A stretch of DNA of 62,803 nucleotides, the filler included, from Guillardia theta CCMP2712 (Eukaryota > Protista > Cryptophyta): the NCBI RefSeq assembly GCF_000315625.1. It is 4 parts of 4 records of this genome, joined end to end, with 100 filler letters (N's around TTAATTAATTAA, not from the genome) between each part and the next. Parts side by side here need not be neighbours in the genome. Positions count along the whole stretch, not along the records: positions 25,739 to 55,022 come from NW_005434445.1; 3 more parts are not named here. The stretch is one strand, 5' to 3'. This document shows positions 29,522-35,500 of this stretch, in pieces. Positions within the stretch are counted from its first letter, which is position 1, and every line of letters starts with the position of its first letter. A model generated the notes under the pieces. It was not told the DNA's origin. It ran no database searches and saw only the letters and a list, made by a program, of their open reading frames with translations. Both the position numbers and the translations under genes were made by a program.

Positions 29522-32500
29522 ATGACTCTGATAGAGGATTTGGAGGATTCGAGTCTTAGGGTTCCGGTAGGTATATAGGATTCTGCCATGTACGTTCACA
29601 ACGTCAGATATTCGTGTACCTGTCGTTGCCTGAGAAAACTTGACGTGGATAGACGAAATGAACTGATGAGGTTCGAGGTGACATGTGATGGTTCCGCAAC
29701 TCCGCATTCATCTGACATCTGACAACACCTTGAAGGAGCATGACGTTGCTGTTTGTTGCAGATGTCCATATCAAAGGTGACTGGAATCCTCTTGAGCCTG
29801 GGCATCAACGACGAGCTGAACGCGCTCTTCGATAGCCTGAGCTCGGAGGACTCTTTCTTGCGCAGACAAGATGAGGTCCTAGAACGCATCTCCCTGCAAG
29901 ACCAGAACGAATACAGCATCTGGTCCGACTCAATCTTCCTGCCCTTGCTGTTTGCTAGCCTTGCACAGTCTACACGCCCATGTGACGTGCTGGAGTGCGT
30001 CCAAAACTGTCAAGCGAAGCATGCGGCAGAGTGGGGAAACAAAAAGGCAACAGGAAGGTACCTGATAGAGCAGTACCGAAAGTCAAATCAGGCACCCAAG
30101 GCCTTTGCGCAGCACTTCCCTATCGAAAGATCTTTGGAAGCTGCCAAGACCTGGATCCAGGGCTCGCTGAACAGCTCTGAGCGATGTTTGTCCACGTGGA
30201 GCAAGCTCAACGCAAGCCCAGACGTGTACTTCATGGACCTCTCGGTCGGTGACGTGCAGGAACAAGAAATGTTCAAGCTGTTGGCGGGGCCTGACGGGAG
30301 CTGGATTCGGGTGGTTCGCATCAACGAGGGCAAGGATGACCAGGACCGCACGCTGGGGTTGCTGGTGCTGCTGTCAGCCCCGGAGGAGATCAAGCTCCTG
30401 ATGGAAAAGTCGGATGAGCTGGAGAAGGAGATCATGGAGCAGGACTGCTCTGAGCGCCCCGCAAGGATTGAGCTACGAGGAAGGGGAGGGTGCAATCGGT
30501 ACAGAACAGCAATCGAGATCGAGATCGTGGATCTGAGTGACCTGACGGAACAGGAGTTCCTGGATGAGGTCAGGAAGGCATTTCGATGCAACACGCGGAC
30601 TAGCCCTGTTGGAATTCAGCTGGACAAGATCGAAAAGATCCAACTGGTGGAGGTTGACATACCTGGGGTGACGGAAGGGGAGCCGATTGGGGACGACTAC
30701 TTCGAAAAGATAGTGCGACTGTACAGAAAAGCTGAGAGCGGCAGCAGGGAGCAAGGGAGCCAACTGCTGTTGAAGTTCGAGGTCTGGGCGACCAAGGTTG
30801 CATCGGGCGAGGAGAGCGAGGAGAACGAGGAGGCTGAAGCAGAGGAGGTTCAGGAGATCGACCCGCTGGGGGTGGTGCATCCCGAGCAAAGAGCAGTGGC
30901 TCGCAGGATCCTTGGGAGGCTCAAGTATGTTTTGGAAGGGAGGGGGTATGAGCTATCTCAGTTCAAGAAGCTTGACTTTGCCGTCTTGCTGCCCAACTTC
31001 GTGTCGTTGAAGCAGCAGACGGAGGCTCGCATGCAGGCGACCTTGTACCCCAACATGGACGTAGACGTAGACAAGAAGGTGGTCCCGCTGCAGGCGAACC
31101 CAGTGATGTCGCTCAAGAAGAAAATCCTGAAGCTCGACAGCAGCACGCTCTTCGTCCTCATCTCCGACGAGTCTCACTGGGCGCTGAACAAGGACAGCCC
31201 ACAGGACCTCATCGTGAACGATCCAGACCTCGTCAAGAAGGCCAACTTCGTCGTCCTCCAGGTCAGCGCGACGCCTTTCGCCAACCTGACCCACCACAGC
31301 CGGATACCCGAGCTGTACGTCCGCTTCAAGGACGACGATCCTCACAGTGATGTCGTGGGCACCTTCAACTACTCTCAGGACATGCGACAGCGGACTGACT
31401 TGCAGGAGCTGCACGTTGTCAAGTGGAACCTGAGCTCGCAGCCCAGCCGGTCGACCTACTTCAGGCTCGAAGACTTTCTGCGCACCATGCCGTCGCCCAC
31501 GCTGCTTCACTGCATCCTGGAGCAGGAGCAGGAGCAGGAGCAAAAGCAGCACCGGAGCAGTCGGGCCCGGCGAAACCTGATCAGAGGGGACGATGCTCTG
31601 TGCAGCCTGATGCCCAGCAGCAGCCAGAAGCGGAAGAAGGACGACCCAGTGCGTGAAGACTACTGGATCGTCGACTTCCTCTTCTCCATGCTCTACTTCC
31701 ATCACATCCGATGGGACAGGGAAGCCAAGAGCCTCAAGCCGCTTCCCGGGGACAAAGACGACCTTCGGGAGGAAGTGGCTTCTTTCAACGAGAACGGCCT
31801 CGAGAAGGAGTTCCTGCGGTTGGCGGTGCAGGGGAACAACCCAAGGCTGATGATGGTAGCAATGGAGTACTTGAAAGCAGTTGAGAAGGAGCTGGAGGCC
31901 GATGACGATGAGTTGTTCAAGTCAGCGTTCGTGTTGAAGCTCAAGGCGGAGATGACAGAGATGAGAGGATCGAGCAGCAGGCAGGAGGAGGAGGAGGAGG
32001 AGGAGGAGGAGGAGGAGGAGGAGAGGCGCTTCTGCGGATTCAACGAGACGGATCGCATGCTAAAAGACCTGCTCTCGAGCAAGAAGATCGATGGCGGGCT
32101 CTACGGACACATGAAAGTCGTCAGGATGTACAACATCAACTTCGCCGACATGGTCTACGATGCCCTGAAGCTCTACCGCGATCACTTCTTCGATCAGTCC
32201 CCACCTCCCTTCGCCATAATCAAGGACTACGGCGGCTCTCCACTCATCGAGTGCATCGAAGATGCTTTCCGCAAGCAGCCGCTGGTGTACAAGAGGGGGA
32301 AACCTCCCCAAACGCTCAACTCGATCATTCAGAAGATGCGATCCAAGAACGCAAGTCAGCGGCGGCGGAACAACAGCGGGGAGTACATCCAGTACAAGGA
32401 TCTGGCAGGCCTGCCTTGCATCCTCCTCCTGATCGAGAAGGGCAGGATGGGCGACACGTTCCCCCAGTCCTTCAACTGTCTTGACATGAGGATCAGGTCC

Positions 32501-35500
32501 TCGGAGAACACGACGACGTTGATCCAGGTGAGAGAGTGTTGAGTGGTAGAGAGTTGTCAGTGTGTATTGTACAGTCACAAACATCGCATGCTTGATGGAG
32601 ATGATGCAAATGTTGATGATGGTTGAGGTACCTGGCTCCACAGTGACGTTGGAATACACATGTTCAGTATCAAGATATGCGTATACTGATTGGACGCATG
32701 TACACTATTGAGAAACATGTGATGTAAGCAGGCACACTTGTACAACAAGGATTCTGTTCTGATAGTCATGCTGCATGCCATTCCATATGACATGTTTGTT
32801 GTTGCATGCTTTATACCTGATGGATATCATCTTGACCCAGCTTTTCACCTCCCTGATCAATCTCGCAGGAGCTCGGACGACTTAGCAGATACGCTGCCCT
32901 TTCTGACCCCATCCCCTTCACAGACGTCGAACATGCCCTCCGGATCGCCAAGGAGCAGAGATGGTTCGAGCAGGGCCTCCCGGCTGCCGTCTATGCAGCA
33001 GAGGCTCCTGGCGTCAGCACGGGCACTAGGATGGTGGGTGTGGCCTGGAGCTGCGATGGCTGGACGGAAAGAAGCATCCTGAAGGGGGAGGGAGGAGGCA
33101 AAAGCTTCAAGATCAGGGAAGGGAACATACTCGTCCTCGAAACCGTCAGGAGCGATCTCGACCTCACCAACTGCATGCTCTTGCACTTTCCGCAGGGCCA
33201 GAAGCGCGCCAAGGACTGCCCTCCCTCATGGTCGGACGTTCTCTGCGTCGAGATAGTCGAGCACGAGAGAGGGTCCAACGAAGTTCGCGTCCGCCATCGG
33301 TCAGGCCCCTCCCTGTCCAGCTGCAGCGGGCGGTACGTCCTGATGCGAGACACGTCGGCCCTCTGCTTCCTGGCAAGCACGGGCAACTGTCCAGCTGGAG
33401 GCGTGCTGAGGACATTCGAGAACGAGCTGCCGTACGCCATCGTGAGCAAGAATCTGCACAGTGCTCTAGAGCGAGCGATCTGGACGGCGGAGGAGTACAG
33501 CAGGGAGATCTGGGAGTGCATCAAGTTCAACGCGCCGCTGCACACGCACGTGAAGAAGAAGAGGAGGGGGAACAAGCCGCTCGAGATCAACGAGCGGGTG
33601 AACGAGCTGCACGACTACCGGAGGAGCTATGAAGCCGTCTCGAGGAAGGGCTCCGGCAGGGCCACGATCGACCACTGCGACTGGTGCAAGAACGAGGACG
33701 TCAGCAAGAGGGGGCAACACTCGCTCCGCTTCCTCCTCTTTGCAGAGTGTCAGATAGGAAAGACGGGAGCCTACCTCCACCTCCTCGACCTCCTCCGCGA
33801 GAAGATCGTCGGCAGCCCTGAGCAAGACTTCGCGCACATCCCTCCGGTCCAGCCCGGGTGCCTCCTCGACCCCCGCTGCTCGACCCCGACCTCTTGGACC
33901 CACCCGTACTGGAAGGATCTAGCTGGGGTCCACATGGGCAAGTCGAGGCTGCTGCAGCTGAAGGTGGGCAAGTACCACAAGCTTGTCATCTTTCAGCGCC
34001 TGAAGCTCCTCCTCAAGTGCGTTGAGAAGTCGGGCACGTCGTGGGTCAAAAGTTACGTCGACGGGATTTTCTCCCTCCCCTCCCCGGACAACCTGGAGGG
34101 AGAGTGTGTGCAGGCGAAGTGCAAGCAAGAAAGGCTCGAGAGCCTGAAGAAGCTGGACAGCTCGGCCCCAGTTGAGGTGCAGCTCGGGCCGTCGGATGGA
34201 GGCTCGACGACGTTCAGGGTCACCGACGAGACGCAGCTGAAGGAGTTGCTGGAGTGGGACATGAACGGGAAGGACGCGTGCTCGGTGGTGGAGGAGGTGC
34301 TGAGAGACGAGCTGACGACTCGCTTCAACGAGAAGATGCTGAGAAAGACCAAGGGAGGCTTCTGTATACCCTCCTCCTTCCACTCCTCCAACGCTCAGAG
34401 CGTCGCCTGGAAGTGCAGGGGGGGCGAGAGGGAGGAGGTGGAGGGGCAGCAGGTGAGTGCTCACGAGTTCGCTGCGAAGAAGCTCCAGGGACTCCCCTCG
34501 GCAAGGGAGAGGAAGAGACCGATCCTGCTCACTCTGTCTGACCGCATGAGAACCTTCAGCCTGTCGAAGCTCTTCGGGGAGGACAGGACCACTTGGCCGC
34601 AGATCTCGTTTCCCTACGGTCAGGAGGAGGTGGAGCGGTACTTTCAGGTGGAGGACGGCAAGGTGACCGGGGCGAAGGAGGAGGAAGTGGAGGGGTCGAT
34701 TCGCAACTGGGTTTTCACGGCTTCGTATGAGCGAGATTCAGAGAGCTCGAGGAAGAAGGGGCGGTACGCGTTCCTCGACAGGAGCAGCGCGTTCAAGGAA
34801 GGGGGCAGGCAGGTCCCAGTCAGGCAGGTGCTGGTGGTGCGTCCTGACAGGAAGGAGCACGAGGGTCAGTTCAGTGCGTACATCAACGACGCTGGCTCCA
34901 GCTACATCATCGTTGCCCTTCCTGCCCGCATGATCATCAGCCGCTCTTTGGAGCAGCTCGGGTTCCGGAACAGCCAGTTCATGGGACAGATGACCGAGGG
35001 GGAGAGCCTGGTGTTGACGCCGGAGGTGGGAGGCATCGGGTACGCGAGGTTGTTTTCTCAGCTCTTTGCGTACCTGCTGGGCCTTGACAGGATCTGGATG
35101 GTGGACGACAACGTCCTGGAGTGTTACGAGCTTGACCTGAACTGCCTGTACCAGAGCTCCCCTCCCCAGCACCGCACCCAGCCAGCCCCCTGCTCCTTCG
35201 CGCGCATCATGCTAAGCATCCAGGACATGTTCGATCAGGAGCAGGGCCTGCCAGAGGCCCTGCTCAAGAATCGTCATGCCGCGTGCCCAACGACTGACAA
35301 CTTCTTCACGCGCCAAACGCTGCACAAGCAGCAAGTCAGCTGCAAGGCAGTGAGAGGGGAGGAGGCGCAACAGGCGGCAGGAGGTCGGCAGAAGGAGGAG
35401 GCGCAGGCAGGAAGCTCGACCGTCAAGTCGAAGAGGGACTTCAGCGGAGACCTGAAGGGGTACGCGGTCATAGGAATCCATAGGAACGTCAACTCGTACT

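Follow-up and report, generated by a model that had tools for sequence, protein, structure and literature searches.

The window considered here is a stretch of 62,803 nucleotides, filler included, joined from four parts of the genome of the cryptophyte Guillardia theta CCMP2712 (NCBI RefSeq assembly GCF_000315625.1), and the gene in question lies in the part taken from record NW_005434445.1 (positions 25,739 to 55,022). When the window sequence is translated, one spliced reading frame on the plus strand carries all of the helicase motifs. The region very probably encodes the circularly permuted superfamily 2 (SF2) ATPase module of a GREB1-family protein, with a TET-associated glycosyltransferase (TAGT) attached. 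The motifs of this GREB1-like protein stand in the order II, III, V, VI, and only then comes the sole Walker A. Both the order and the GREB1-type assignment had been proposed in an earlier inspection, termed here the sequence-only reading; translation bears out every motif coordinate given there, and the Pfam family PF20692 (Circularly permuted SF2 helicase found in GREB1 proteins) matches exon A with 440.1 bits (E 2.4e-131, profile positions 2-420).

The same profile continues across the intron, with a match to residues 2-260 of open reading frame (ORF) 2 at 170.2 bits (E 1.1e-49, profile positions 482-706). The gathering score of this family is 26.2 bits, and since the two parts score 440 and 170 bits, the motif order is far beyond chance. 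Exon A encodes the first RecA lobe (RecA1) minus its P-loop strand. It also encodes a helical insert, which contains a poly-Glu tract, and the second lobe (RecA2) as far as the motif VI glutamine. The catalytic set is complete: the Walker A lysine and threonine, the Walker B Asp-Glu pair, motif III, and the glutamine and two arginines of motif VI are all present. Motif VI and Walker A are separated by 291 amino acids. A conventional Walker A upstream of DESH, which the sequence-only reading had held to be incompatible with it, was looked for as a GK[ST] tripeptide, and none occurs in any plus-strand frame from 28000 to 31166.

The glycosyltransferase gives a smaller profile signal. The TAGT family, PF20691, matches the segment 34531-36000 at 30.5 bits, with only profile positions 60-93 aligned, and the whole of ORF 2 at 26.0 bits, which is under the gathering score of 27.5 bits. 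The glycosyltransferase region is also supported by tblastn to homologues that bear precomputed PF20691 matches.

By these matches the window gene is a member of the already described GREB1 family, and not a new kind of gene. The domain description of the GREB1/GREB1L family is that of Iyer et al. (2013, as cited in PMC7968844). Human GREB1 has been described as consisting of a Zn-binding domain, a permuted and catalytically inactive SF2 helicase domain and a glycosyltransferase domain (PMC7968844; PMC6163654), the last having its relatives among the DNA-base glycosyltransferases of phages and kinetoplastids (PMC7968844). GREB1-like proteins have been reported from choanoflagellates, ichthyosporeans, mycetozoans, cryptomonads, haptophytes, heterokonts and heteroloboseans (PMC7968844; PMC6163654). 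With the PF20692 plus PF20691 family the window protein shares the permuted order and the C-terminal TAGT glycosyltransferase; it differs in an insert of ∼180 amino acids ahead of the P-loop. Animal GREB1 has an N-terminal Zn-binding domain (PMC7968844), whereas the 369 N-terminal amino acids of the window protein (29762-30868) match no Pfam family at E ≤ 1. Because no Zn-binding domain was detected in this N-terminal region, the protein appears to be best classed as GREB1-like, and not as an orthologue with the full animal architecture.

Gene structure and transcription

The first of the two plus-strand ORFs is open from 29753 to 32542, and ORF 2, in another frame, from 33031 to 36984. The intron between the two exons has the donor CAG/gtgaga at 32527/32528 and the acceptor ctcgcag/GAG at 32868/32869; from position 32869 the translation reads ELGRLSRYAAL and continues into ORF 2. 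That motif VI is split by an intron had been read from the sequence beforehand, and transcript-like contigs agree. Contigs of two probable RNA sequencing runs (X2 and X3, from two studies) omit exactly 341 nucleotides with GT and AG ends, and a DNA run (X1), possibly that of the source assembly, is unbroken across the intron. The X2 and X3 contigs cover 29760-32524 and then 32866-35200 without a break, and no second intron is seen in the read-derived contigs between 29760 and 35200. These contigs are interrupted by a Glu repeat at 31971-32033.

The closest complete protein in the databases leads to the same exon boundary. This is the Guillardia theta CCMP2712 hypothetical protein GUITHDRAFT_146844 (XP_005821911, 2974 amino acids), with an identity to the window protein of 40% across the two exons and of 44-49% in the circularly permuted SF2 (cpSF2) domain. 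The window protein itself is absent from the collections searched. In tblastn its residues 638-1547 align with 29780-32527 and residues 1547-2756 with 32866-36468; the alignment thus switches exon at Q1547, which is the motif VI glutamine. The GREB1-like gene is transcribed, and it is spliced as read. The features of the gene are collected in Table 1.

The piece comes from a draft assembly and has runs of N elsewhere, and the motif order might in principle be an artefact of assembly or of the gene model, produced from two genes or from a rearranged contig. One X2 contig of 4766 nucleotides covers motif V and, past the splice, Walker A as well, and it runs on to 35200, and the same permuted order is found in about 100 homologues from unrelated sources. 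The spanning transcript contigs rule out an artefact, the probability of which is put at practically nil.

At the 5′ end, the X2 and X3 contigs extend beyond 29760 by 7-38 letters that do not match the window, beside an AG acceptor at 29760-29761 and an ATG at 29762. Read in frame, these upstream letters are open. A stretch of 24 of them has no match in the whole window with up to two mismatches allowed. Because the upstream letters are unmatched in the window, adjoin an AG acceptor and are open in frame, a 5′ exon likely lies outside this piece and the N-terminus of the protein may reach further. The upstream neighbour, on the minus strand at 26837-27799, codes for the N-terminal part of a TRAPPC9/Trs120-like protein (PF08626, E 7.8e-07), and it limits the room for a promoter or a 5′ exon of the GREB1-like gene. 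At the other end, between 36700 and 38700, there are very long coding-like tracts of poly-Ser, poly-Gln, poly-Ala, Asn-rich sequence (NNNSNN) and poly-Glu, and these low-complexity tracts are found where the GREB1-like ORF ends and within the next ORF.

Table 1. Coordinates of the GREB1-like gene and of the motifs and domains of its product (positions in the window)
Feature	Position	Strand	Basis and remarks
Exon A	29762..32527	+	ORF, transcript-like contigs, tblastn; possibly not the first exon
Intron	32528..32868	+	341 nt, GT..AG, within motif VI; skipped by transcript-like contigs
Exon B to stop codon	32869..36984	+	Open frame; contig support up to 35200
N-terminal region, 369 amino acids	29762..30868	+	Homologous to GUITHDRAFT_146844 residues 638-1010
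cpSF2-GREB1 domain, first part	30872..32527	+	PF20692; ORF 1 amino acids 374-925
Motif II / Walker B, DESH	31166..31177	+	Translation; family columns
Motif III, SAT (VSATP)	31265..31273	+	Translation; family columns
Motif V block, EKGRMGDTFP	32435..32464	+	Translation; family columns
Motif VI, Q, final codon of exon A	32525..32527	+	Translation; family columns
Motif VI remainder, ELGRLSRY, both arginines kept	32869..32892	+	Exon B translation (ELGRLSR, 32869-32889)
Lineage-variable beta-rich insert, ∼179 amino acids	32893..33429	+	Bimodal family spacing; long-class alignment
Conserved alpha/beta connector, LPYAIV to H-C-D (33673-33681)	33430..33741	+	Long-class alignment
Walker A and helix	33742..33810	+	AECQIGKT at 33742-33765, Q at 33751; preceded by hydrophobic strand LRFLLF
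TAGT glycosyltransferase core	35026..35127	+	PF20691; wider glycosyltransferase region ∼34699-35730
VDDN, DxD-type motif of TAGT core	35101..35112	+	Translation

Conservation of the motif set

A HMMER search with a profile of cpSF2 domains provided a family set of 1154 cluster representatives (E ≤ 0.001); at the stricter limit of E ≤ 1e-30 there are 244. Motif columns were counted in the best 150 of the 1154 representatives, the denominators being those with a residue at the column. The columns are nearly invariant. In motif II, D is found in 110/111, E in 109/111 and H in 107/111 representatives; motif III has A in 116/117 and T in 114/117. The motif V block keeps G (140/142), D (129/142), T (139/142), F (134/142) and P (138/141), and motif VI keeps Q (134/135), G (133/134), the first R (130/135) and, somewhat less strictly, the second R (112/135). 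Apart from this second R, conservation of the catalytic residues comes to 94-100% in motifs II, III and VI, and to 91-99% in motif V. At Walker A the Q is present in all 125 representatives with a residue at this column and G-K-T in all 123. The window protein has the consensus residue at every counted motif position, and the full and intact motif set that the sequence-only reading described is therefore also the family consensus at every catalytic residue.

Among the best 150 representatives, stickleback GREB1L is the sole degenerate one. It shows DNSH, SCF, KDPLGETFP and QEVGLAC at motifs II, III, V and VI, yet GPPQVGKT is kept. The protein of the choanoflagellate Salpingoeca rosetta has intact motifs. 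Because the motif columns are nearly invariant and only the fish GREB1L is degenerate among the best 150, an intact set is the norm of the family; it is the ancestral and usual state, to which vertebrates are the exception. Judged by these columns, the window protein is a typical non-animal member.

With exon B as the query, a word-based search returned nine proteins, the best of which is from the cryptomonad Hanusia phi (42% identity). The Hanusia phi protein, GUITHDRAFT_146844 and the paralogue of the latter, GUITHDRAFT_146838, have SDESHW, AECQIGKT and the long insert, as does the window protein, and GUITHDRAFT_146844 has one Walker A only. GUITHDRAFT_146844 differs in having ∼630 extra N-terminal residues with a caspase domain (Peptidase_C14, E 1.4e-15), of which no counterpart is seen in the window. 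GUITHDRAFT_146844 and GUITHDRAFT_146838 are near-identical GREB1-like genes on one 183-kb contig, and by their similarity and position they are a recent local duplication. The piece of the window has a single GREB1-like copy.

The Hanusia phi transcript protein departs from its relatives at one place. It breaks after TLIQ (residues ∼374-450), is without ELGRxxRY, and homology returns ∼75 residues further on. This break is consistent with a retained in-frame intron at the site of the window's intron, and it suggests that cryptophytes share the intron within motif VI.

Predicted structure

An AlphaFold model was made of GUITHDRAFT_146844 residues 1015-1910, from a 90-sequence alignment; this homologue is 44-49% identical to the window pieces. 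The model has a mean predicted local distance difference test score (pLDDT) of 76 and a predicted template modelling score (pTM) of 0.80, and it displays a two-lobed SF2 fold. The confident parts are lobe 1, with the strand that ends in DESH (model residues 88-98) and SAT (128-130), a long insertion of helices, and lobe 2, which holds motifs V and VI. The insert that follows (560-730) has pLDDT of about 40-55, and the connector (728-805) ∼64-93, mostly 83-93. Further on, a strand (839-843), the P-loop (844-851) and a helix (850-864) reach pLDDT ∼95 between low-confidence linkers.

Searches of solved structures place the model among SF2 enzymes. Foldseek returns RIG-I, MDA5, LGP2, Hef, Dicer and RapA (E ∼1e-4, probability 0.95-0.99), and VIA returns RIG-I, INO80, FANCM, NS3, DHX8 and Chd1, with Z of 8-9.6 and ∼300 residues aligned. 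Four of the VIA matches (RIG-I, INO80, FANCM and NS3) have Z of 9-9.6. Because the Z values of the VIA matches are tied, the SF2 subfamily cannot be named. At the sequence level, a search of the PDB with the family profile detected no similarity to any solved structure apart from RPB5 (E 0.008), which was judged a probable chance match. Canonical SF2 enzymes, i.e. RIG-I/MDA5/LGP2, Hef/FANCM, Dicer, INO80/Chd1/ISWI and NS3, have the same two RecA lobes with a helical insertion between the lobes, and their motifs II, III, V and VI are the same as those of the window protein. The difference is in Walker A, which is at the N-terminus of lobe 1 in the canonical enzymes but follows lobe 2 in the window protein.

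One can ask whether this is a true permutation. Alternatively, lobe 1 would simply lack a P-loop, and the downstream GKT would belong to a separate small nucleotide-binding element. The downstream element, however, consists of a hydrophobic strand, the P-loop and one helix, without a Walker B of its own. It has the high pLDDT given above within the whole domain of the G. theta homologue, whereas in the window exon-B piece folded alone its pLDDT is ∼40 and the strand is absent. Moreover, Pfam models one permuted domain, and compact members of the family hold the whole module, P-loop included, in ∼470-520 amino acids, which corresponds to two RecA lobes. As modelled, the P-loop element seems confident only in context, as expected if it is integral to lobe 1. 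A separate P-loop mini-domain, with no Walker B after the P-loop and an element confident only in context, was rejected as unlikely, and the probability left to the absence of a permutation is very low.

The segment between motif VI and Walker A

The sequence-only reading had left about 290 amino acids between motif VI and Walker A unassigned and considered that they may be an inserted domain. The spacing is as it was given, and an insertion of ∼180 amino acids is borne out by the family, but the segment is not without assignment, as PF20692 itself covers the insert: taken alone, the insert matches profile positions 432-595 (E 1.9e-19), and no other Pfam family matches it. Distances from motif VI to Walker A are bimodal across the family. 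Members with AEPQIGKT or G[RLK]PQIGKT have 78-140 amino acids, and the AECQIGKT class mostly 168-350, with three outliers of up to 465. The window protein and G. theta (311 amino acids) are in the long class, and because the spacing is bimodal and the window protein falls in this class, the ∼180 amino acids represent a real insertion.

An alignment of 33 long-class sequences divides the segment. Residues 186-321 of exon B are common to all 33 and contain the LPYAIV strand, H-x-D and LRFLLFAECQIGKTGAYL. P188, H269 and D271 are invariant or nearly so, and the nearly invariant H-x-D is ∼20 residues ahead of the P-loop strand. Residues 9-185 are variable, and residues 21-80 are found only in cryptophyte sequences. 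Thus the ∼290 amino acids consist of a beta-rich, lineage-variable insert of ∼180 amino acids that is conserved among cryptophytes, and of a conserved core of ∼100 amino acids. Cryptophyte identity to G. theta is 37% in the insert versus 50% in the core. Because 37% identity is kept among cryptophytes, the insert looks like a folded and constrained module and not like a linker.

In the AlphaFold model of the window exon-B piece alone (mean pLDDT 58), the insert has nine strands with pLDDT of 40-78. Searches with this fold gave nothing over noise, the best VIA-wide match (Z 7.4) being to an ATP-grasp B-subdomain-like shape. Parts of the insert bear some resemblance to small beta-barrels: residues 74-159 have VIA-wide Z of 4-5 to such barrels, including that of the Sen1 helicase (Z 4.0), and residues 72-163 have an Atlas shape match (TM 0.56) to a generic small beta-barrel of 103 amino acids. 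An Atlas language-model feature search gave 0.94 for the 1B barrels of UPF1, SMUBP-2 and MOV10, which is below both the recognition and the shared-feature thresholds.

Within the connector, the H-[YC]-D triplet (33673-33681) sits roughly where DEAD-box proteins have the Q motif that recognizes adenine. By analogy, it may serve as the counterpart of the Q motif.

Proposed mechanism

In the proposed scheme, the element of strand, P-loop and helix that contains AECQIGKT, with which lobe 1 begins in the canonical order, would have been relocated behind lobe 2. In the folded protein it would rejoin lobe 1 next to the DESH strand and so complete the lobe. ATP would then be held between GKT and DESH on one side and, on the other, the pair of arginines that motif VI contributes from lobe 2, and its hydrolysis could drive movement on, or clamping of, nucleic acid. 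The motor, in turn, would position the attached glycosyltransferase or give it access. Taken together, completion of lobe 1, the ATP site and a hydrolysis-driven motor that positions the glycosyltransferase amount to an active ATPase or translocase stimulated by nucleic acid, and it is likely that the module works in this manner. The window protein is probably an active ATPase; this is argued because residues of hydrolysis and coupling are nearly invariant across many divergent lineages. With regard to the glycosyltransferase, its acceptor could be a hydroxymethylated base, by analogy with the phage and kinetoplastid enzymes, or a protein, by analogy with mammalian GREB1.

Several points weigh against this scheme. 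The whole-domain model is that of a homologue 40-49% identical, and not of the window's own spliced protein. The comparison of the P-loop element in context and alone is weakened in that it involves different sequences and alignments of different depth (90 versus 33). Literature searches did not find ATPase assays of GREB1-family members, and the human domain has been called catalytically inactive (PMC7968844; PMC6163654). Furthermore, as fish GREB1L retains GKT with motifs II, III, V and VI lost, conservation of the P-loop alone is no proof of hydrolysis.

The last two points also favour a different role, in which the domain binds nucleotide or nucleic acid without working as a motor and is a scaffold or clamp for the glycosyltransferase; such a role has been proposed for vertebrate GREB1. 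In human GREB1 the inactive permuted domain is described as possibly nucleic-acid binding (PMC7968844; PMC6163654), and fish GREB1L indicates that a P-loop can be retained for non-hydrolytic reasons. In the window protein, however, D-E-x-H, SAT, motif V and the two arginines of motif VI are all retained, and the conservation of these residues in over 100 divergent representatives is difficult to account for unless hydrolysis and coupling are under selection. A scaffold role is thus considered unlikely for the window protein, and an active motor remains the preferred interpretation.

The base J machinery of kinetoplastids includes JBP2, which combines a SWI2/SNF2 ATPase with a hydroxylase, and the TAGT-family glucosyltransferase JGT. 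The logic of the base J machinery and of the phage DNA glucosyltransferases, i.e. an SF2 motor with a TAGT-type glycosyltransferase acting on modified DNA bases, is analogous to that proposed here. In the window protein, in contrast to the base J machinery, a single polypeptide carries both a permuted motor and the glycosyltransferase, and the window shows no TET/JBP hydroxylase. Perhaps non-vertebrate GREB1-like proteins are translocase-coupled glycosylation enzymes, in which an ATP-driven motor moves a glycosyltransferase along DNA or RNA. The cryptophyte insert, with a small beta-barrel nested in it, could then act like a UPF1-type 1B barrel, gating nucleic-acid binding and coupling it to docking of the P-loop. 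This extended proposal is speculative and is regarded as doubtful, and the barrel analogy has weak evidence.

Significance

Work on GREB1 has dealt almost exclusively with its role as a cancer gene induced by oestrogen, and the helicase-like domain of GREB1 has been regarded as dead. The window gene is a further example of a widespread ancestral form that has the full ATPase motif set beside a glycosyltransferase. The discovery is a modest one: Pfam already has the domain type, there are hundreds of similar proteins, and intact motifs are the rule and not the exception. Nevertheless, the biochemistry of the GREB1 family, such as the track of the motor and the acceptor of the glycosyltransferase, would be better approached in a protist protein than in the degenerate vertebrate ones, and the window protein is a candidate with which a permuted SF2 motor of this family, with its motifs intact, could first be studied biochemically.

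Neighbouring features

Other coding segments are found downstream in the same piece. A plus-strand ORF at 41184-42458 ends in a reverse-transcriptase fragment with YVDD (RVT_1, E 3.2e-05, below the gathering score) and is probably a decayed retroelement. Also on the plus strand, an ORF with a CBM20 starch-binding domain (E 7.7e-15) at 53573-55021 is cut by the edge of the piece. On the minus strand, a leucine-rich-repeat segment (LRR_8, E 4.4e-13) adjoins a multi-pass hydrophobic ORF that has no Pfam match (43671-44243 and 42790-43938), and the two may be exons of one membrane receptor-like gene.

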